A DNA stretch of 64,000 bases from Diplonema japonicum (Eukaryota; Protista; Euglenozoa: Diplonemea): NCBI GenBank assembly GCA_964019335.1, contig OZ025664.1, positions 620,001-684,000 on the forward strand. The letters are read 5' to 3'. Shown here piece after piece: positions 12,669 through 26,297 of the stretch; position 1 is the first letter of the stretch, and every line of letters starts with the position of its first letter. The translations under genes and the position numbers were made by a program. The notes below the pieces were generated by a model, which saw only the letters and a list, made by a program, of their open reading frames with translations, did no database searches and was not told the origin of the DNA.

Positions 12669-13401
12669 ATGTTCACGTTGCGAAGGCTTGCGGGTGTAGC
12701 GGCAGGTGTGGCAGTGAGTTGGAAAGTGCAGGAGAGTTTCTGTAAGGAAACAAGCAAATGGGGCTATACACCGCCGTTTCCAATAAATCCTGCAAATGCA
12801 GTGGTGTATTTCGATATTGCCGTTGAGGACACAGTGATAGGCCGCGTAGAGCTTGAGGTGTTCGATGATGTGTCACCGCTGTTGGCCACTAACTTCAAGG
12901 CATTAAGCTCTGGGTACTTCCTTGGATATCCCATAGTGACAAAGCACCCAACCAAACACAAGCAGCATAACGATAGAAAGCTCATATCCTACCACAACAC
13001 CCTTTTTCACAGCGTCAAACCAGGCTTCATTGCCCAAGGCGGTGACAATGAAACCTACAACGGCAAAGGTGGGGAATCTTACTGCGGTGACATCTTAAAG
13101 GACTGTTTCAAAGGTAAGGCAGGCAGTATTGCTGGTGAAGGATGCCTCTGCATGGTCACCCACGCCCGCAACACCAACAAATCCCAATTTTTCATCAGCT
13201 ACTCAGCCCTTCCCCACCTCAACAGGACGAACTCTGTCATCGGGCAGGTTATCAATGGTTGGGATGTTATGAAGGAGATTGAGACACTGGGGTCAGTATC
13301 AGGCTATCCCCAAAAGGAGATCTCGGTATGCATAATTTTCTTCACCACGGCGGACCAACGATTCTAAAGCTACAGTTTCTGTACTTTATTGGTAGGGAAG
13401 G

Positions 13402-13446
<45 letters not shown>

Positions 13447-16400
13447 ATAAAAAATGTCAAGTGACAAAATGACGAAGCCGAGCAAGGCGGGCGCCTCCAA
13501 GGGGCCCCTACCGGACGGGAGCGAGCCCGACCAAGACCCGCCGCAGCTAGTGCTGCAAACCACCGAGGTGGTGATCAGAAAGACCCCCCCCGAGACGACC
13601 CCCAAGACGAAGCCCACCCGGAAGCACTACGACGCAGTCGTAGCCCCGCTCGCCCCCAAGCCCACGTGGGCGGCCTTCATTGCGCAGGCTGGACTGGGGA
13701 AGTCGATGAGGTTCGACGGTGTCCTAGGCACCATCGTAACCACAGGGACTCCCCCTCTTCAGTCCTACTCAGTGAGGGACGGAGACACTACCCATAAGGT
13801 GGTGTTCGAGGAGCAGAAGGGATCCTTTAAAAGGAAACTACCGGGTGGGTCTCGTAGAGGGACCAAAATAGACTTCCGCAGGGAGTTCGGGGGGGCGAGC
13901 TGGTCGCAGGTGTGGGAGCTGGCCGACGAGAAGGAGGGGAGGAAGAAGAAGGCGAGAGAGGAGAAGGGGGCCAAAGCCGCAAAAAGGAAGGCCGAGGCCA
14001 GGGAAAGAGAGGAGAAGCTGGAGGCGAGGATCCAGGCGCTGGAGAGCGCCGAGAAGGAAGAGGGAGGCGGGATGGAGGACGACTGGGGTTGGAGGGAAGC
14101 CATGGACAGGCGGATTGCCGAGTTGGAGCAGGCGAGGGAACAGGCCGGGCTGTGGGAGAAGGCGTGCGAGAGGAAGGTGGAAGAGGTGGAGATGAGAGGG
14201 GTGCGTACGGACGAGAGGACTGAGGAGCTGAACAGGAGGGTGGGCCTGGTGGAGGGCGAGCTTGGTGGCCTGAGGGGGGAGATTTCTTCCTTGAAGGCGT
14301 CATCGGAGAGGACGGAGCGGTCGGTGGAGGAGCTGAAGCAAGGGATGAACAGATTACTCATCCACTTGACTACAGGAGCCCCCCCACCAGGAACCTCCGA
14401 GGAGGCAGACGGGTCCCCAGAACAGAGGGGACACGTGCCGTCCACCGATGGCGCTGACGAGGGGACTGACACCCCAGACTGCCCCAGGCACGCTGCGACA
14501 CCGGAGAGAAAGGGTACCGTAGCACCTTTATGCTACGACACCCCCCCACCAGCCGAAAGGCTCGTAGGAGTTGCCACAACTAGGCAGACAACCCTACACA
14601 CCACCCCCTCGCAGACAACGCCCCTGCACAAGGTGAACCCTCCCGTAAAAAGGAAGGTTGAAGGCCAGTACTAAGGGCCGTGCAATCTCATTCAACACCC
14701 CTTTCACCCCCTTTCCCACACCGTCTCTCACTCCCTGTCCCTACTCCCAAACCCCCAACACTACACCCCATCTAAACGAAGATGAAGTACTACCCAGCCT
14801 CTCAAGCCCTGGAAGCTGGGGTGACCGCAAAGGCAGCACATCATCACCACATCACCATCCCTCATCTTTCCCTCTCTCCACGCACAATTCCTCCCCAAAC
14901 AAGCACTCACAAACTCCCGTCACCGGTGACGAAGTATTACCCAGTATCCAAAGGCCTGGACCTAGGGGTGACCACACAGGCAATCTTCACATTCGCAGAA
15001 ATCCCGCAGCCAGCGGTCCGCACGGAAAACACTTACTGAGCTGCGGGGACATAGAAGCGAACCCCGGTCCAACCACCGAAAAGACAACAAGAGTTGAACA
15101 CTCTCTCCCTCCCGTCCCCTCTACTTCCTCTCTCTCACAGGCACACTCCAACACAACACCACCACCTAACAACATCAACGTACTGTCTCTCAATGTCAGA
15201 TCCCTAACGGTGAGCACCACAGCGCAGCTGCTGAAGGGCATTGAGACACACAACATCGACGTGCTCCTACTCCAAGAGACTTTCCTGAGGCCGTCGAAAG
15301 ATATAACCGGAGTCTTCACTGGGTTCAAGGCATACCGCCGAGACCGAACACGACCGGTGAAAAGAGGAAAGCAAATCAGCGGAGGGGGTCTCGTCACACT
15401 GGTCAGAGAATCGATACCGTCGAAACAGATCGAAGTTCTTCAGAAACCCAGCGACGTGACGGAAAGACTCGACGTAGAGATCTCGCTGCCCAACCGGAAG
15501 CCGTACAGACTCGTCAACCTGTACCTGCCTCCGACAACGGGTAGAGACGGCGACGACAGACCACCCCCCGAGAAATATTTCCGCCCGGCAGAGCTGCCTC
15601 ATGACAGTCACACCATCATCGCCGGTGACATGAACGCCCACCACACGATGTGGGACAAAAGGGGCACACCGAATAAGCTGGGAGAAATACTGCACAGCTG
15701 GATGCTGCGATGGGGCTACAGCACATGGAACAAGAGCAGCGAAGCCACGATCCTGAACCCGTCAGGAAACCCAACCTCTCCGGACATGGTAATGAGCGGC
15801 GCAGAGTTCGACAAATCTTCTTGGAGGACGTTGCCAGCAATGGGCTCAGACCACGTTCCGATGTTCTTCAGTCTGAGAGGGGGAGTCAGCCAACCGACCA
15901 GAAGAGTACTCTACTCTTGGGGGAGGGAGGCAAGGAGCGCGTACAGGGAGACGATGGAAGAAAAGTGCAGCAGGCTGCTCAGGGCCAGAGACCCGATAAG
16001 GCTAAACGCTGAGTTTCGCACACTTCTTCTATCGGCAACCGAATCGTGCGTCCCCAGGAAAGGACAGAAGAAAGGGAAGGTTTGGTGGAACGACGAGATT
16101 GACGCACTCGCAAGGCGACGAAGCACACTGAAGGCGAAGCTGTTGTCCGAGGATCACGACGGGAACGACGAAGACCTGGCACGTCTAGCGGCGATGGAGG
16201 CTGAGCTGGACAGGGCGATAACGAGCGGGAAGCAGGCTGCCTGGGGCGACTACACCAAGAAGTTGTCCAAGGACGGAAACCTGACGCAAGCCTTCTCGGT
16301 CATCCGCAGATTCGACGGTCGCAGCGAGAAGCCACCAATAGCCCCGCTCCGACGAGGAAACGGTATCGCCACCACCGACAGGGAGAAGGCCAGTGTACTC

Positions 16401-19400
16401 GTCGAACACTACGCGAGGGCCTGCTCCCCAAGGACGACTGCCAAGTCGGAGGAAGTGATCACCACCATCAAGAAGGACGCGAAGCCCGGGACAGACAACG
16501 ACTTCCCCCTGGTAACGAAGGACGAGCTGGACTCGGTGCTGCGAAGGCTGAAGAAGGGCAAGGCTCCGGGCCCAGACGGCATCTACAACGAAATGCTGAA
16601 GTACCTGGGACCGGTGGCCAGGGAAGTTCTACTCCTCCTCTACAACTCATCCCTCCAGACCGGTGTCGTCCCTGCCGAATGGAGGCGGTCTTCCATCATC
16701 CCCCTCATGAAAAAGGGCAAAGACCAATCCGAACCCGCCTCGTACAGGCCGATCGCGCTGACGTCAAACATCGTGAAGACGTTGGAGCGAATAGTCAAGG
16801 ACAGGATGTGCTTCCTGCAGGACACAGGACGGGTAAGGCAATTGCACACATCGCAGGCGGGTTTCCGGAAAGGGAGGTCCACGGAGGAAAACGTGCTGTA
16901 CGCCGCCTCAAAGCTCAAAAGTGTCAGGCTGAGCCAAGGTCTGGGGGGTCTCCTGCTGTTCGACTTCAAAGGAGCCTTCGACACAGTCTGGCACAAGGGA
17001 GTGATCGCAAAGCTGATAGGCGACGGTTACCCTCCCAAGCTCGTGAAATGGATCACCTCTTTCCTCGACCAACGTAAAGCCTCCGTCTGTGTGAACGGGG
17101 AACACGGCTGCGTGAAGACAATGACAGGGGGCGTACCCCAAGGCACCATCCTGGCCCCGCAGCTCTTTTCCATCTACGTCAACGACCTGGCCAGGTTGTA
17201 CAGGAAGGCTGGAATCGACGCGGTACGCAGACGACATAGCGATAGTGCTGGAGGCGGGGAGTCCTGCCGAGCTGAACAAGAAGGTGCAACGCGCGGTGAG
17301 CCTCACGGAGCGATGGTGCGAGACGTTCTCGATGAAACTGTCCCAGGAAAAGACAGAGTTCATGCCGGTAGAGGGACAGTTCTGGAACTCGCACGACAGT
17401 CTCGCAAACCTCATCAACGCCCGCTTCCCCTCGAGTGGGGCGAAAGTCAAGGTGGTACGCGAGGCTAAATATCTTGGCGTCACCTTCGACGAAAGCATGA
17501 ACTTCCACGAGCATGTGCAGAAGGTGAAGGGAAAGATCAACAGCCGTCTTCGCCTGCTGCGCAAACTCGCCGGAACAAGGTGGGGCTGCCGCAAGCACAC
17601 CCTAAGGACGCTGTACCTGACGTACGTCCAACCGGTTCTGCGCTACTGTCTCGGTGCTTACGGCAACTTCGTGGGACATGCTGCTCTGGCCGAGTTCGAC
17701 TCGCTACAATACACAGCAGCGAGGTTGATAACGGGATGCTTCGACAAGACTTCCGCGACGGTGACCAGGTCAGAGGCGGGCATCTGGGAGATTGAATCCT
17801 TGCTGGAACACGACACCCTGGTGCTCTACGAGAAGGCACAGCGTCAACCGGGGACAACAGCGGAGAAGGCAACAAAGATATCCGGGGGTCAGATGTGGTA
17901 CGGGAAAAGCTGGCGAAACACCGCGCTCGACTTGGCGAAGAGTCACGGGATGCCGGAACGCGAAGACCTACCACACCACTCAGTCACTCAGAGCGCAGAC
18001 CTGCAGCTCCCTCCATGGGTCCAACCCAAAGTCCTGTTCCACCCCGACCTAGTCCGCAAGGTACACAAGAAGGACGAAAAAAGTCTCAAACTCCGAGCGG
18101 CCTTCGAATCGATCAGGAGGCACGGCATCCCAGATGCGATCGTCTACACCGACGGGTCAGTCACCGGACACAGGAACGGCGGTTCGGCAGCTGTGATAAG
18201 GATCGGGTCTGACACACCGAAGCAGGCACGCAAGAGCGGAGGAGCAGTGACTTCGGCCTACCGATGCGAACTGAAAGCGCTGAACCTGGGGCTGCAATTG
18301 ACACTGTACCATACCCGGAGACAAGGTGTGACGACAGGAGTAGTGCTGCTGTGCTCGGACTCCCAGTCGGTGATCAGAAGACTGATGCAGGGCCACAGAG
18401 AGATGAGGCAGAAGGAGGAACTGCTGGCTTGGAAATGGCTGGACGCGCTTGACCGCCAAGGCCTCTCCACTATCATCCAGTACGTTCCCGGGCACTGCGG
18501 CCTACCAGGTAACGAGCAAGCCGACCGACACGCCAAACGCGCCGCAAAGGAGTCGACACCGGACGGCCCGACGGACCTGATGACCACAAAGAGCCTCATC
18601 AAGAGGTCGGTGAACCGCGACTGGGCAGCCTCGTGGGAGAAGACAGGTCGGGACAAAAAGTACCGAGAGGAGATCGGCGCGAGGTACCTCCCCTTGAAGG
18701 AACTGTCCTGCAGACACGTTGAGGTACAGATAACGAGACTGCGAACGGGCAGGAGCCACCTGACTTGCGGTTTCCTGTCGAAACCCGTCCAGAATGACAT
18801 ACGTTGCCTCTCGTGCCATTCGATCCAGGACAGACACCATCTGCTGATCGGGTGCCCAGCTGGAGACAAGGTCCGCGAAGAGATCTTCGGGGATGACATC
18901 CCCACGACCACGAAGGAGATGCTCACAATGAGGGTGAGTGAAACCGCCTCCTACCTGAAGAGGATGGACCTCATCTGAGACTCTCACGACCGCCGAGCCG
19001 CTGACCGCAATCACAGGACGTAGAAAAAAAAAAAAAAAAAAAAAGGAACAGAAAAAAGTGAACCAAAAAGTACTAGTGAACCCTCTCCCCCTCCCCCTGT
19101 GTTTCCCATTATTACCCTGTCGTGCACCCCATCTTCTGTCTTCACCTTTCCCCGCCCCTTCACACATCCCCCCGTATCATTTCCCTTTGTTTTGAATTTT
19201 CTAAGGCTCCGCCGCCCAACAAAGCTGGCTGAAGGGGATGCCTCCGTGCCAGTGTGCCGCTCGTGAGGGCGAGCACGGACGAGGTACCCCACTCCTCAAA
19301 AACCCGGAGGTTCGCCCGAAGGGTGCTGGCTTGGGAAGCGGGCTGGAGAGCTGCCGGGGTCACGGAGGTGGGCGAAGTCGCGAACACTGGAGCCCACGAA

Positions 19401-22400
19401 CCGGCCCCACCTCCGTCCTCGGTACGTATGGATAGTTTAGCGGAAGTTTCAAGGTTATCTCATTCCTTCCCCCCTTTCGTTAGATACAGGGAGACCCTTG
19501 GTCCACCTGTTCTGTCCCCCCCCCCAGCCTTTGCTTCGCACGTCAGTGGTTCATTTATTATTATTATTACCACGGCGGTTGTAAAGGAAAGAAAAGAAAA
19601 GAAAAGAAAAGAATCATGTCGACCTCCAACAAGAAGAAAAAGAGGCCCGCTCACCACAAGTCCAGGACGGAAGAAATCCTGGAGAAAGCCCGCGGTGAGC
19701 GGGTAAAGGACAACGCCGCCGCCAGGGCGAAGCGCACGCGCGAGGAGGTGGAGAGGAAGCGCGCAGAGGGGGTCACGCCGGTGGTGACACCCTCCCCCGG
19801 GCAAGGGAAGAAGGCGGCCAGAAGGGCCAGACAGAAGGCAGCAGCTGCTGACGCTGCCACCGCCGCCGCTTCGGGCTCCGACGACTCTGTCGTCTTAATT
19901 AGCGAGTCGCCGGGCGTTGTCACCTCGTTCACGGTCGACACGCCAGAGGTCAGGAGGGCGAGGATGAGGACTGCTGCCGCCGACACCACTGCCACTGCTC
20001 CTGCACCTGCTGCTGCCAACACCACTGCTCCTGCACCTGCTGCTGCCGACTCCCCTGCTCCTGCACCTGCTGCTGCCGACACCACTGCTCCTGCGCCTGC
20101 TGCTGCCGACTCCCCTGCTCCTGCGCCTGCTCCAGCCTCTACTGCTGCCGTGTGGTCTACTGCCGTCCTCACTGCCGCTGCCTGCGACACCGCCCTCCCC
20201 ATGTCGGACTCTGACACCGACGAGAAGGACACGGCCCCCGCTCCCGCACCGGCCCCGGAGCCTCACTGGGATCTGGTCCCCGACACGTGGGACGCCCCCA
20301 TCTACACCAACACTGCTCCCCCTGAGGAGGTGCCCCGCGCCGTCGTCGCTCTCGACGACCTCCAGCAGGTGGACGCGATTCGCACTGCGAGGCCCACGGC
20401 CTCCCTGACCTTCGTCCTCTTGACGGAGGTTGCCGGTTCGACCACCCCATGCACCGTCATCGTACTCGCCGGCCAGCGTGTCGTGCACAAGGCCGTGCAC
20501 ACCTTCTCGGTCGGGTCGAACCCCCCCTCCTACACCCCACTCGCTTCTTTTGATGGCGGCACTGAGGTAGTGTACGTCAGCGTGAAAGCTGACAGCGTGA
20601 ACGCGGCGAAGGCCAGGGTTCGGGACCTCGTCGCGACCCAGGGCGTGGCGGTGGAGGAGCAGGCGATCTTCCGCCCGAAGAAGATCGACGGGAACGAGCC
20701 GCGGGCGCGGCACTGGAGCCACGAGGTGGGCCTGCGGCTCCCGGCGGCATCCGTCCATGCGGTACTCCGGGCCTCGGGCGACGGCTGCATGGTCAGGACG
20801 ACCGAGCGGCGCGGGGGGTACACCTACGTGCCCATCGTAGCGGAGGGGAGGGCGGAGGCCTTCCAGCTGGCGAAGGCACTGGGCGGGTTGTCCCTGGGGG
20901 TGGCCCATCGCAAGGGTTGGACCGTGAGGTGCCTGCCGGAGACGGAGCAGCGTCTGAGGGAGGCCCTCGCCAAGCAGAGGACAAAGCGTCGGTACCTGCT
21001 CACCGGAGCCCCGCTGTCTGTTACCAGGGCAGCCTTCGACGGGATGATGGACCACATCGGTTGGAAGCCGTCGTCCATCATCCGACGCTCTGACACGGCG
21101 TTCCAGGGCACGAGGCAACTCGTGTTCTTCATCGTCGCCGACGCCCCGCCCCCCAAGGCCAGGACATGGCTCTTCGGCTCTCGTCTCGTTCGACTGCACG
21201 ACGCGGAAGACCACCCGAGCGTCACGCTCCCGCCCCGCACCAACAAGAAGGCTCCACCCGCGGCTCGGACGCCGGTTGCGGCAACCACGGCCCAGACGCC
21301 GACGCCGGCCCCTGGCCCCACGGTGCAGTCCACAGGGCTGCCGAGCACCAATCCGTGGTCATCTCCACCGAGCTCGGTTGCCCCTCCGCCACTTGGCACT
21401 GTGACTCCGGTCTCCTCTGCGGCTTCCCCGACCACGACACCTCCCCGTGACTCCCAGAAGAAGAATCCCGCACCGGAACCAGAGGTCCCGGCGCTCCTCG
21501 CGCTGATCCAGTCGATGCAGGCGACCATCGACGGTCTGCAGGCGACGGTCCGCGACCTCCAGGAGAGGATGGCAGCGTCACTTGGCGCGCCGGCGTCATC
21601 TGCAGACGGAGCTGGGCGGACGGCAGTTGCTGGGAAGGGCAAGGGCGGCAAGGCTGGGTCCAAGGCAGGGACGAAGGGGCACCAGGCGCAGGGCGTAAGC
21701 ACGCCAGGCCCCTACCCGACATCGACGGAGCAAGGGGGCGGAAGGGGACGCGCCCAGTCGCTGGCTGGCGACTCTGCTTCCCCCAACGGGGCCGGCCGTG
21801 GACGGGCAGCCTCTGTGGGCCCGGCCCCCGCCCCTGCCAATTGAAGGGGTCCCGCTGAGCAGGGGGGGCGTCAGATCGACGACCACGCCCCCTCTCCTGG
21901 TCTCCCGCGCATACAGCCGAGGAGACACCTTCCACATCACTTGTACGACGTCCTCCCTTCCTTGATCCCTTCCTTACTTGAACGGATGTCGGCCAGGGAC
22001 CTGCTGGGGCTGCTTGGGCTGGTTGAGACGAACCCCGGTCCACCTAAGAAGCTCCCACCCCCGAAGCCGAAGGGACTCAGGGTCCTGTCCTGGAACTGCA
22101 ACGGTCTTGCCGCCAAGTGGTCAACCGTGTCCTACCACGCTGTCCTACTGACGCTGGATATCATTATGATCCAGGAGACACACCTTAGGGAGGGGCATGA
22201 GACACCATACCTGCCTGGATACACGTCCTACAGGAGGGACCGCACAACACCGGTGACGGACGGCTCTGCGACGAGAGGCGGTGGTGTCATCACGTATGTC
22301 CGTGACTGCCTTGCCTCGGAGGAAGCTCCTTTCGTACTCCCTGAAGGTGACAGTGTCACCGAGCGATTAGACGTGAGGATCTCCTGTGTGAAGCGCGTCC

Positions 22401-25400: not shown

Positions 25401-26297
25401 TCTTCGCACGAACGAGTGTGGTACGGCCATCCCCTCCCCCCGCCAGCCGGAGTGCAGCGGGGAGAGCAAATGCTTCCCCTATCATCCCCATGCACACTCG
25501 CTTCCCCTTTTGATTTTGAGAGATTTTACTCTCACCCTTTCATGTTTCGCTCAATGGAGCAAATCCCTCTCGAGGGGGCGACCGGGGCCAGTTCCGGTCA
25601 CCAGAGGTCCCAGTTGAGAAAAACGACGAACTGGGGTCAAGGTCCCCGTCCGAGTCACGTAGGTCTACGCGGCTTGGAATTAAAGTAATTCAGCCCTCTT
25701 CGGCTGTTCCAAACAGGTGCACGGGTTGGCGGAGTCCACAGCTCCATCTGATTGCAGAAGAACTGGTCTTCGCCCTCCCTGTAATATTTCCATGCTTCCC
25801 TTCACCTTTCCCCTTCCCAGGTGTTGCTCCCCCATGGTGGCACCTATTGGTATTTTGAAAAAAAAAACGGCGGTTGTAAGGTCGTGTAGCTCAGTCGGTA
25901 GAGCATTGGTCTAATAAGCCAACGGTCCCAGGTTCGAGCCCTGTCACGACCATTTTTTATGATCCTTTAACTTCTTTTTAAGGTTCGTCACTGTGGAATA
26001 TTGAAGCACAAGAGTGGTGTTTTGAAGGATGCCGAAGACCCTTTGACTGTCCCGCCAAGGTATGTTATGTCGTTTCGTGAAAACTGACTGCAAAACAGTG
26101 TTGAATGGACTGAGAAGGGTGGAATCAACTTAACGAATGTCGCTCCTGGAAAACTGGATATGGTGGACGATCCTTTGTTCAACGGTGACTGGGTGGCACC
26201 TATCGGGGCGTACGACATGCGATCAGGTAATGGTGCAGGGAAGCGAGGTAAACCAATTCGTGAGCTTTCGATGGATCCGGCAGCGAACGGATGCTAG
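12669..26297 (+). CDS. Cyclophilin-type PPIase; exons ~12669-13325, 25983-26059, 26099-26297, split by a 12.66-kb intron
   Basis: VYFDI...GRVELEVF, FHSVKPGFIAQGGD, SQFFI, VIGQV..GWDV. Joining donor GTATGC (13326) to AG (25981-25982) restores the terminal strand KEIS|VRHCGIL; a 39-nt intron (26060-26098) extends the ORF to TAG 26297. Confidence 0.85.
13354..13403 (+). ncRNA. Spliced-leader (SL) RNA-derived fragment: 38 nt of SL exon plus GTAGGGAAGGCT
   Basis: ACCAACGATTCTAAAGCTACAGTTTCTGTACTTTATTG closely matches the recalled diplonemid SL and has the euglenozoan core CAGTTTCTGTACTTTATTG, followed by a GT donor. Confidence 0.9.
13454..14674 (+). CDS. Element 1 ORF1 (406 aa, coiled-coil, no recognisable zinc knuckle)
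   Basis: ATG after an A-run; E/K/R-rich heptads; lies upstream of ORF2 inside the TSDs. Confidence 0.8.
   Translation: MSSDKMTKPSKAGASKGPLPDGSEPDQDPPQLVLQTTEVVIRKTPPETTPKTKPTRKHYDAVVAPLAPKPTWAAFIAQAGLGKSMRFDGVLGTIVTTGTPPLQSYSVRDGDTTHKVVFEEQKGSFKRKLPGGSRRGTKIDFRREFGGASWSQVWELADEKEGRKKKAREEKGAKAAKRKAEAREREEKLEARIQALESAEKEEGGGMEDDWGWREAMDRRIAELEQAREQAGLWEKACERKVEEVEMRGVRTDERTEELNRRVGLVEGELGGLRGEISSLKASSERTERSVEELKQGMNRLLIHLTTGAPPPGTSEEADGSPEQRGHVPSTDGADEGTDTPDCPRHAATPERKGTVAPLCYDTPPPAERLVGVATTRQTTLHTTPSQTTPLHKVNPPVKRKVEGQY
14658..18978 (+). pseudogene. Element 1 ORF2: 2A-APE-RT-RNase H-CCHC, with a frame break immediately before YADD
   Basis: GDIEANPGP; LLQET, GDMNAHH, GSDH (APE); KAPGPDGI, YRPIALTS, QAGFRKGRST, DFKGAFD, GVPQG, YADD at 17224-17235 in the +1 frame; YTDGS, SDSQS, PGHCGLPGNEQAD; CLSC-x7-H-x4-C. 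Confidence 0.93.
19616..21844 (+). CDS. Element 2 ORF1 (742 aa; basic N-terminus, Ala/Pro repeats, C-terminal coiled coil)
   Basis: Long ORF starting 31 nt inside the element; ends in TGA in frame with ORF2. Confidence 0.82.
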   Translation: MSTSNKKKKRPAHHKSRTEEILEKARGERVKDNAAARAKRTREEVERKRAEGVTPVVTPSPGQGKKAARRARQKAAAADAATAAASGSDDSVVLISESPGVVTSFTVDTPEVRRARMRTAAADTTATAPAPAAANTTAPAPAAADSPAPAPAAADTTAPAPAAADSPAPAPAPASTAAVWSTAVLTAAACDTALPMSDSDTDEKDTAPAPAPAPEPHWDLVPDTWDAPIYTNTAPPEEVPRAVVALDDLQQVDAIRTARPTASLTFVLLTEVAGSTTPCTVIVLAGQRVVHKAVHTFSVGSNPPSYTPLASFDGGTEVVYVSVKADSVNAAKARVRDLVATQGVAVEEQAIFRPKKIDGNEPRARHWSHEVGLRLPAASVHAVLRASGDGCMVRTTERRGGYTYVPIVAEGRAEAFQLAKALGGLSLGVAHRKGWTVRCLPETEQRLREALAKQRTKRRYLLTGAPLSVTRAAFDGMMDHIGWKPSSIIRRSDTAFQGTRQLVFFIVADAPPPKARTWLFGSRLVRLHDAEDHPSVTLPPRTNKKAPPAARTPVAATTAQTPTPAPGPTVQSTGLPSTNPWSSPPSSVAPPPLGTVTPVSSAASPTTTPPRDSQKKNPAPEPEVPALLALIQSMQATIDGLQATVRDLQERMAASLGAPASSADGAGRTAVAGKGKGGKAGSKAGTKGHQAQGVSTPGPYPTSTEQGGGRGRAQSLAGDSASPNGAGRGRAASVGPAPAPAN
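19970..20135 (+). repeat. 30-bp coding minisatellite (APAPAAAD/N-TT/SP, ~5 copies) in element 2 ORF1
   Basis: GCTCCTGCACCTGCTGCTGCCGAC... tandem units. Confidence 0.85.
21845..25153 (+). CDS. Element 2 ORF2: 2A-like-APE-(truncated RT)-RNase H-CCHC
   Basis: LVETNPGP; WNCNGL, IQETH, GDFNAHH, GSDH; VLGP..YADD; YTDGS, TDSLS, PSHCGVPGNEAAD; CPAC-x7-H-x4-C; frame open from the ORF1 stop, first ATG 21986. Confidence 0.9.
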   Translation, partial: RGPAEQGGRQIDDHAPSPGLPRIQPRRHLPHHLYDVLPSLIPSLLERMSARDLLGLLGLVETNPGPPKKLPPPKPKGLRVLSWNCNGLAAKWSTVSYHAVLLTLDIIMIQETHLREGHETPYLPGYTSYRRDRTTPVTDGSATRGGGVITYVRDCLASEEAPFVLPEGDSVTERLDVRISCVKRVPVTLSNVYLTPVSISRGTRDPEYLRPGSLPVGKNTIVAGDFNAHHSSWDAKVTTPNERGNVVRDWLDTHGYTVYNNRDEPTRDSPPRVLDLVVGRCAELEPRTLGTWGSDHSPVSFRLPLEDAYCSERPCPTWNFKKARWDDFTAAAAALLTKIDTKAHIDSFTKEVTEALLHAADDHIPLCGVRRGPTPWWTAELEDAFEERNVLGPVLYTIYVDELARLLVGMADLSVLYADDVAVVVSAGQGDLAGLERGAQAVMDAVEGWCGRRGMLLSSSKSQAVCVPYQKRLNVYFSSSRVPLCPGAFQDPVLNLGVGACGTLSGVRELSGFRVVEAGGKRSFDIPAAIRRSDIGYMAARPLPLCGSAKYLGVTVDSGLTFDEHAGDVLRRADKRLRVLRLLSGTTWGCKKATLRSLYLTYVLPLLRYCMGVYFARLRDSRVEELVGLHQRAAVLISGCWHGSGTAKVVAEAGLLPLRQMAEGAAAVLTAKSFCWRTSPVHREVLEQKRMTGMGNGWLRAGILALRRCGLQGWTTQEGFRKYDTFELLTASPKVAPWHAFLVEFRTALPGRVTRSSPDVDKRKAAVEALAALPPGIHAYTDGSVVRDRQRWRGGAGVFLQLPRPHEPVSESFGVSNFCSSFRAEGLAVKVALDMVAALRSEHTTLADSRLSICTDSLSLLDQLRAGPSRQRERLDHETWELLVAAARAQGAPVILQFVPSHCGVPGNEAADRLAGEGTKRELTRPSLDYRSVRALVRRQIQQRSAVIVGEVAPRYARATGLRAACFPQSLPRLAETVISRLRVGHSALFFGFLQAAGPNRKKAELSCPACGAKMSREHVVGGCAVVGRGSLDAPNGRPSLVECLSKRVTQVFTLIADSGLLDWARSGVFTSPSAATAGTAAPSFIPPAVSLDAGPAAPVLR
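25880..25952 (+). tRNA. tRNA-Ile (AAT), inside the cyclophilin intron
   Basis: Acceptor GGTCGTG/CACGACC, TAGCTCAGTCGGTAGAGC D-arm, anticodon arm TTGGT-CTAATAA-GCCAA, GGTTCGAGCC T-arm, T6 terminator. Confidence 0.97.

Follow-up and report, generated by a model that had tools for sequence, protein, structure and literature searches.

At positions 13354-19568, the stretch of Diplonema japonicum DNA analyzed in this study (64,000 nucleotides, C17:620001-684000; in the following the window) contains a non-LTR retrotransposon of the APE/RT/RNase H type, a dead copy belonging to a recently active family, which with high probability was reverse-transcribed from the element's own spliced-leader (SL) trans-spliced mRNA. 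We propose that the leader is found at the start of the element because this copy was made from an mRNA which had already been spliced. The evidence comes from the element itself, from the SL RNA genes, from the sister copies of the element and from the other SL-headed sequences in the genome (62.5 Mb in 132 contigs).

Anatomy of the Element

The initial annotation of this locus had described a target-site duplication (TSD), followed directly by 38 nt of the SL exon without its first A, 12 further nucleotides, an A-run and the start codon of ORF1, and had concluded that the SL belongs to the inserted cDNA and not to the target. This arrangement was confirmed in all its parts (Table 1). The SL exon of this genome is 39 nt long, and the 38 nt are its nt 2-39. 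With the SL lying inside the 10-bp TSD, it is indeed part of the inserted cDNA. The 19-mer core of the SL occurs once in the window and not at all in 100 shuffles.

Table 1. Positions of the element and its parts within the window.
Feature	Positions	Strand	Remark
Left TSD, ACCACGGCGG	13344-13353	+	Same 10 nt recur at 19569-19578, adjoining the tail of the element
SL exon nt 2-39 as DNA copy (ACCAACGATTCTAAAGCTACAGTTTCTGTACTTTATTG), lacking the first A	13354-13391	+	Same sequence as the exon in the six SL RNA genes with promoter
GTAGGGAAGGCT, the element's own 5′-terminal sequence	13392-13403	+	Present without SL in five sister copies
5′ UTR: A(41) leader, then TAATAAAAA	13404-13453	+	A-run at 13404-13444
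ORF1, 406 aa	13454-14674	+	ATG at 13454; same ORF in L046
ORF2, N-terminal part, APE endonuclease and reverse transcriptase (RT)	14658-17468	+	Pfam Exo_endo_phos 2e-13, RVT_1 1.4e-23
ORF2, C-terminal part with RNase H, frame-shifted in the window copy	17245-18978	+	Pfam RNase_H 8.5e-15
3′ UTR, including an internal A-run (19024-19045) and, at its end, (ATT)4 (19557-19568)	18979-19568	+	Nine other copies are collinear as far as the ATT repeats
Right TSD, ACCACGGCGG	19569-19578	+	Directly after the (ATT)4 tail

The 3′ end of the element is backed by nine other full-length copies, and a comparison of the 5′ ends within the family showed that the length of the A-run differs from copy to copy. No significant Pfam domain was found in ORF1, while the Exo_endo_phos (APE) domain of ORF2 is located N-terminal to the RT. 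In the sister copy L046, ORF2 forms one frame of 1442 aa. The window copy is dead, as a private 5-nt deletion after position 17222 frameshifts and splits its ORF2. The ESM Atlas yielded only generic APE-RT-RNase H clusters for the proteins of the element. An Rfam search of the element gave no ribozyme and no other match, a result of low weight as a true SL gene remained unmatched as well. The sequencing run X6 looks like RNA, since a cyclophilin exon is spliced in it at about 13325/6; the element therefore sits in an intron of this gene, on the sense strand.

SL RNA Genes and the Sequence Following the Leader

The SL core occurs 217 times in the genome. At nine of these sites the SL runs on into GTACCCAATCTGATCC, and in six cases it is preceded by a conserved block that ends in GGGAGGTT/AACCAACG (here and below, a slash marks a junction). 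These six promoter-bearing sites are the SL RNA genes of this genome. Such a gene consists of the 39-nt exon and a 97-nt intron, which starts with GTACCCAATCTG and ends in a T-run, and the 135-nt SL RNA folds far better than shuffled sequences (z -4.7). At C15 the SL RNA genes adjoin a gene for 5S rRNA, recognized by Rfam with 102.6 bits. It was also the only Rfam match at the SL genes, where no SL model was hit.

The 12 nt following the leader in the window had been taken for the start of the SL intron including its splice donor, and the entire head for unspliced SL RNA. This interpretation is contradicted by the alignment to the SL RNA genes of this species, in which the genuine intron starts differently: the 12-mer agrees with GTACCCAATCTG, the intron start in all six genes as well as in all three SL-RNA chimeras described below, at only five of 12 positions. 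The proposed pairing of the 12-mer with AGTTTCTGTAC as a stem-loop was likewise not recovered, the 12-mer being essentially unpaired in the MFE and the centroid fold (z -0.60 relative to shuffled sequences). Folding of the SL together with the 12-mer gave nothing significant beyond the exon's own hairpin, in which the exon pairs with itself. Moreover, the junction SL/GTAGGGAAGG was found genome-wide in the window alone. The 12-mer constitutes the 5′ terminus of the element itself and not SL intron, as sister copies without an SL carry it as well and as GGTAGGGAAGGCTW is confined to the family (seven sites genome-wide, with all seven sites of the 12-mer accounted for).

Sister Copies With and Without Leader

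The family comprises 10 full-length copies in the genome which are about 99% identical. Three of them are identical over their whole length, and the family was therefore active very recently. Five of the 10 copies (L045, L046, L049, L050 and L052) do not contain an SL and start with GGTAGGGAAGGCT(T), immediately preceded by an A-rich TSD, which results in the arrangement ...AAAG/GTAGGG, i.e., ...A(n)G/GTAGGGAAGGCT. In L048 and L051 the SL is joined to GGAAGGCTT, 4 nt further into the element and directly after the AG of GGTAG (GTAG/GGAAGG). The SL of L051 starts at C3, inside an 11-bp TSD (AAAATTGGGCG), and in both L051 and the window copy the SL ends exactly at the 3′ end of the exon, inside the TSD. 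Thus, AG precedes both junctions that could be tested in this family, AAAG/GTAGGG in L045 and GTAG/GGAAGG in all copies. Of the two remaining copies, L047 is slightly truncated at its 5′ end, and L044 exhibits a partial SL piece followed by SL(2-39), TGGGGG and GGTAGGG. With its partial extra SL and its TGGGGG filler, L044 looks more like a product of template jumping, which counts against trans-splicing.

In a maximum likelihood tree of the 6.1-kb bodies of the family copies, the window copy is sister to the SL-less L045 (96/91), which carries the arrangement AAAG/GTAGGG. A single clade of all SL-bearing copies was rejected by AU topology tests (p 3e-12), and so was a clade of L048 and L051 (p 2e-4). 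The distribution of the SL on the tree requires four state changes, with each SL-bearing copy being nearest to an SL-less one. As the SL is not monophyletic on this tree, it must have been gained, or lost, repeatedly and was not stably inherited in the family. Nowhere in the assembly does the window copy have an identical counterpart; the nearest copies differ from it by 19-23 substitutions, and L045 thus represents its sister type rather than a proven parent. None of the 10 copies is located in or near an SL gene. Their targets are A-rich sites, six of which are within about 25 bp upstream of a tRNA-like sequence, as judged by eye.

SL Heads Throughout the Genome

The leader of the window copy is one of at least 200 SL heads that are dispersed in the genome. 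Among the 217 SL core sites, 95 distinct ones were inspected, of which 91 are heads that do not belong to an SL gene. The missing first A, already recorded in the initial annotation, proved to be a general property of these 91 heads: 51 of them start at A2, 16 at C3 and 17 apparently at A1. As the 17 apparent A1 starts correspond to the 25% expected from an A flanking the insertion by chance, A1 is effectively never copied. A block of the RT at a modified cap-adjacent nt 1, which had been put forward as the cause, would fit this pattern by analogy to the kinetoplastid cap 4. Alternatively, transcription of the SL may begin at A2.

Classified by the first 10 nt after the SL, the heads fall into 39 junction types, and junctions vary within families. 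A G is found directly 3′ of the SL in 30 and a GT in 16 of the 39 types. Counted by copies, GT follows the SL in 62 of 91, a high number that goes back to a few large families. For 16 junction types an SL-less or longer sister was present among the inspected loci. Eight of these 16 junctions are located directly after an AG, which is a clear enrichment over the background of 0.071 (p 5e-6). Each of the other eight testable types is known from 1-2 copies, and a G precedes the junction in seven of the eight; these non-AG junctions may stem from deletions or from jumps mediated by microhomology. That half of the testable junction types genome-wide is not preceded by AG counts against trans-splicing. 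At three loci (L017, L026 and L060) a new SL is followed by the relic TTTCTGTACTTTATTG, after ACAG, which points to splicing at the relic's own ACAG. Some other families, for example the subtelomeric one with GTCGTTCG, are almost uniformly SL-headed.

Three of the nine loci at which the SL continues into its intron lack the promoter, namely L004 (C2:150.5k), L113 (C30:484.5k) and L115 (C107:8.9k). All three start at A2 after T-rich flanks. While L113 and L115 include the whole SL RNA through to ...GAGACACTTTT, L004 ends about 10 nt earlier. In each case the SL RNA is followed by 2-4 extra nucleotides and then by the 5′ end of a LINE family. These loci are template-switch products of the U6-L1 kind, and the true intron is present in them over about 85-97 nt, compared to the 12 nt discussed for the window. 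The SL heads thereby form two discrete classes, exon only (more than 200) and whole SL RNA (three), a split that would be predicted by splicing on the one hand and template switching on the other. The rarity of the whole-SL-RNA chimeras further argues against a switch onto the free exon, which is much rarer than SL RNA, as the main route.

Proposed Origin of the Leader and Its Alternatives

According to the proposed origin from a trans-spliced mRNA, a parent of the L045 type would start with GGTAGGGAAGGCT right after its A-rich target, thereby presenting the junction ...AAAG/GTAGGG. Read-through transcription from upstream and trans-splicing of the SL at this AG would yield an mRNA composed of SL, GTAGGGAAGGCT, A-run and ORF1, which would be translated. 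The RT of the element would then copy this mRNA up to nt 2 of the SL and halt before the cap-adjacent nt 1, and the cDNA would be integrated by target-primed reverse transcription, generating the 10-bp TSD. The stop at nt 2 may be due to a cap modification which blocks base pairing, as that of the kinetoplastid cap 4 does. Transcripts starting at the 5′ end of the element itself are the probable source of the SL-less copies, whose extra G may originate from the cap. Such a cap-derived extra G is known for L1.

The joining of the SL by trans-splicing is suggested by the sequences of the genomic copies. The tract preceding 3′ splice sites in D. japonicum is unusually rich in A (PMC12621601), which makes an A-run followed by G a plausible acceptor. 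The consensus of the 5′ splice site is (G)/GTATG (PMC12621601), and ATTG/GTAGG is therefore a non-consensus donor. The run X6 covers ORF1 at low depth. Among the assembled (Logan) contigs of the sequencing runs, none crosses the SL, the 12-mer and the A-run, as the A-run blocks bridging. One G of the window junction can be assigned to either side (ATT[G]GTAGGG), an observation that counts against trans-splicing as it also fits a switch from a cDNA extended by the cap G onto a free SL exon.

Such a switch, in which the RT would have moved from the 5′ end of the element RNA (GTAGGG plus a cap-derived G) to a free SL exon or to the SL end of another RNA by means of 1-nt microhomology and without any splicing of the element RNA, would account for the one G common to both sides of the window junction. 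That RTs of this kind do switch is evident from the three chimeras of whole SL RNA and LINE, and both the duplicated partial SL with G-filler in L044 and the G preceding seven of the eight non-AG junction types would be in line with it. Yet, the abundant full-length SL RNA gave rise to only three chimeras compared to more than 200 exon-only heads, so that the much rarer free exon is unlikely to be the main acceptor. In addition, L048 and L051 were independently joined exactly after an internal AG, and AG is enriched before the junctions in general (p 5e-6). A template switch as the origin of the window head is therefore considered improbable. Cis-splicing of a lost chimera of SL RNA and element, by which the SL intron would have been removed up to the AG before GTAGGG, finds a parallel in another family, in which the chimera junctions ttttAAAG/GTGGTGGGG and ttttAG/GGTGGTGGGG match both junction variants of the SL-headed copies. 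However, the assembly contains no SL-RNA chimera of the window family, with all seven sites of the 12-mer accounted for, and trans-splicing at the same AG would lead to the same product in one step less, which leaves cis-splicing with a very low probability.

The initial annotation had offered three explanations for the head, two of which relied on unspliced SL RNA (the exon plus the first 12 nt of the intron), derived in one case from a source copy inside an SL gene and in the other from a template switch comparable to U6-L1 chimeras. The GT directly 3′ of the exon and the SL RNA chimeras at other loci would agree with this idea, but the intron starts with GTACCCAATCTG in six genes and three chimeras (five of 12 positions matching), five sisters carry the 12-mer without an SL, others have the SL joined elsewhere, the junction to GTAGGGAAGG is restricted to the window and no fold lends support. 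Specifically, a source copy in an SL gene is at odds with the absence of family copies in or near any such gene, and a template switch onto SL RNA with the fact that real chimeras hold the whole intron, whereas the window copy contains the exon only. Unspliced SL RNA is hence hardly conceivable as the source of the head. The third explanation regards a DNA-encoded SL as a stable, functional component of the family (self-leader for translation, SL mimic or cis donor) which is inherited from copy to copy. The frequent GT after the SL (in 62 of 91 copies and in 16 of 39 junction types) and the almost uniformly SL-headed families, such as the subtelomeric one, could be seen in its favor. In the window family, however, half of the copies lack the SL and the others exhibit three different junctions, the SL-bearing copies are scattered over the tree with each being nearest to an SL-less copy, the sequence ATTG/GTAGG departs from the donor consensus (G)/GTATG (PMC12621601) and the window copy is frameshifted. 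Stable inheritance of the SL thus appears highly improbable. Taken together, neither the reading of the window head as unspliced SL RNA nor that as an SL mimic holds.

It is conceivable, though rather unlikely, that LINE families of this diplonemid are built to exploit SL trans-splicing. Their first nucleotides (G, or CAG in another family) and the A- or T-rich target which they choose would then form an acceptor at every insertion, and promoterless copies would thereby obtain a capped, translatable mRNA from host read-through. In uniformly SL-headed families, the DNA-encoded SL plus GT might work as a self-leader or donor.

Comparison With Known Systems

The closest analog of the window element is provided by dinoflagellate retrogenes, recycled processed cDNAs with DNA-encoded DinoSL relics (PMC5585692, PMC6050394, PMC12014239). 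As proposed here, a trans-spliced mRNA is reverse-transcribed and integrated, and the leader remains at the 5′ end of the DNA. Repeated rounds place a truncated relic behind a new SL (PMC12014239), which resembles L017, L026 and L060. Unlike in dinoflagellates, the tagged RNAs are those of autonomous LINEs themselves, in a diplonemid (Euglenozoa), and the diplonemid leader differs in being 39 nt long and copied from nt 2. A further difference is the coexistence of SL-less and SL-headed sisters, which allows the acceptor site to be read directly.

SLACS, CZAR and CRE1 of trypanosomatids insert within the exon of SL RNA genes, i.e., the SL is their target, and encode a restriction-like endonuclease. 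They share with the window element that euglenozoan non-LTR elements are found beside SL sequence. Membership of the window element in the CRE/SLACS/CZAR group was rejected on account of its APE endonuclease, the SL lying inside the TSD, the location of copies near tRNA genes and the absence of all 10 copies from SL genes. U6-L1 chimeric retrocopies arise by a switch of the RT template onto a small nuclear RNA. Similarly, L004, L113 and L115 fuse SL RNA, from A2 through the intron and in two of them to the U-tail, to a LINE 5′ end. The window copy itself was rejected as a chimera of this type, for its SL part consists of the exon alone and stops precisely at the splice site.

L1Tc and ingi are, like the window element, euglenozoan APE/RT/RNase H LINEs that need an mRNA 5′ end within polycistronic units. 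They possess the internal promoter Pr77 and an HDV-like ribozyme, and L1Tc transcripts are unspliced (PMC1874656, PMC3185411). Unlike L1Tc, the window element showed no ribozyme match, and its genomic copies point to SL-spliced mRNAs as templates.

Implications

In the literature searched, no description of SL-headed retrotransposons in Euglenozoa was found, although this search was limited and represents weak evidence of absence. With the dinoflagellate SL-relic retrogenes as closest analog, the present case is a new lineage and a new substrate for a known type of event. The sister copies would constitute a genomic record of the trans-spliced mRNA of a LINE serving as template for retrotransposition in a euglenozoan, together with the AG acceptors that were used. 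From the uniform stop at nt 2 of the SL, seen in at least 68 heads and the three SL RNA chimeras, a modification of nt 1 in the diplonemid cap that blocks the RT is predicted. As in dinoflagellates, SL heads may be used as tags for retrocopies and for dating LINE activity in diplonemid genomes.

Spliced-leader junctions and chimeric retrocopies

Three chimeric retrocopies could be identified in the genome, all of which run from nucleotide 2 (A2) of the SL RNA into its intron and continue, after 2-4 extra nucleotides, with the LINE part, an arrangement like that of U6-L1 template-switch products. The intron reaches to ...GAGACACTTTT in two of the three and is ~10 nt short in L004, and the LINE partner belongs twice to the GTGGTGGGGATAAC family and once to the GGCTGGATATTGGG family. 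The AGs at the chimera junctions match those of the SL|junction variants (SL exon joined directly to element sequence) of the first-named, GTGGTGGGGATAAC family.

A double SL piece was found at the 5′ end of L044, a full-length copy of the window element's family, where TSD A7 is followed by SL nt 7-19, SL nt 2-39, TGGGGG and GGTAGGG. This double piece and the G-filler suggest that the junction was made by RT template jumping. Across the families, eight junction types have the SL joined inside the 5′ UTR of the family concerned with no AG before the join point, which is preceded by G in seven of the eight. Non-canonical acceptors, microhomology template jumps and deletions with one end fixed at the 3′ end of the SL are all possible origins of these junctions.

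In three further loci (L017, L026 and L060) a new SL stands before a 16-nt relic of an older one (TTTCTGTACTTTATTG), the same pattern as in dinoflagellates. Read from its sequence, this order would mean that the transcripts were trans-spliced at the internal ACAG of the relic and then went through a second round of retroposition.

Locations of the features (G000, genome assembly; C, contigs; L, excised loci)
Feature	Location	Strand	Composition
Chimeric retrocopy L004	G000 C2:~150.5k (L004:1481-1660)		unspliced SL RNA + LINE 5′ end
Chimeric retrocopy L113	G000 C30:~484.5k	minus	unspliced SL RNA + LINE 5′ end
Chimeric retrocopy L115	G000 C107:~8.9k	minus	unspliced SL RNA + LINE 5′ end
Non-AG junction loci	L104, L095, L076, L063, L059, L056, L009
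SL RNA genes	G000 C4:650.1k
SL RNA genes	G000 C15:779.1-779.5k
SL RNA genes	G000 C51:59.2k
SL RNA genes	G000 C59:512.4-512.8k
L044 5′ end	G000 C44:~64.5k
L049 5′ flank	G000 C36:~427.3k		35-nt stub
5′ UTR, window copy	window 13404-13444		poly(A) leader
Private substitutions	window 18336-19469
tRNA-Ile(AAT)	window 25880-25952

SL RNA genes and a probably subtelomeric SL-headed family

The assembly contains no more than six SL RNA genes with a promoter. Two pairs, with a spacing of ~350 bp, lie near contig ends, and a 5S rRNA gene adjoins one of these pairs. It may be that the arrays were collapsed or left unassembled.

The family headed by SL|GTCGTTCGTGTTCTGCTGGTGCC (62 sites genome-wide, e.g., L008, L012 and L053) clusters near the ends of contigs, at distances of a few kb at most. 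Copies at left ends are on the minus strand and those at right ends on the plus strand, so that their 3′ ends face outward, and some adjoin CAAACCCG-type repeats (L061, L101 and a loose end in the RNA-like run X6). It is probably a subtelomeric element that is almost uniformly SL-headed.

The family of the window copy and its target sites

The window copy has 11 private substitutions, all of them in its last 1.2 kb and none in the first 4.9 kb. Recombination, gene conversion or membership in a different 3′ subfamily may account for this skew. The 5′ UTR, in this copy as in the nine other full-length ones (L044-L052), consists almost entirely of a poly(A) leader of varying length (41 A in the window copy), which, speculatively, might help SL-less transcripts to be translated. 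A stub, A9 CGCAA GGTAGGGAACGCTTAAAAAAC, lies immediately upstream of the full L049 copy and duplicates both its target and the 5′ end of the element.

When tRNA genes were picked out by eye in the 3′ flanks, six of these nine copies apparently lay at most ~25 bp upstream of one. The window itself has a stack of two different LINEs, upstream of tRNA-Ile(AAT) and in the intron of the cyclophilin gene. The positions of LINEs beside tRNA genes suggest that insertion is targeted to sites upstream of these genes, with A-rich TSDs of 7-11 bp; the TSD of the window copy is atypical in being GC-rich.
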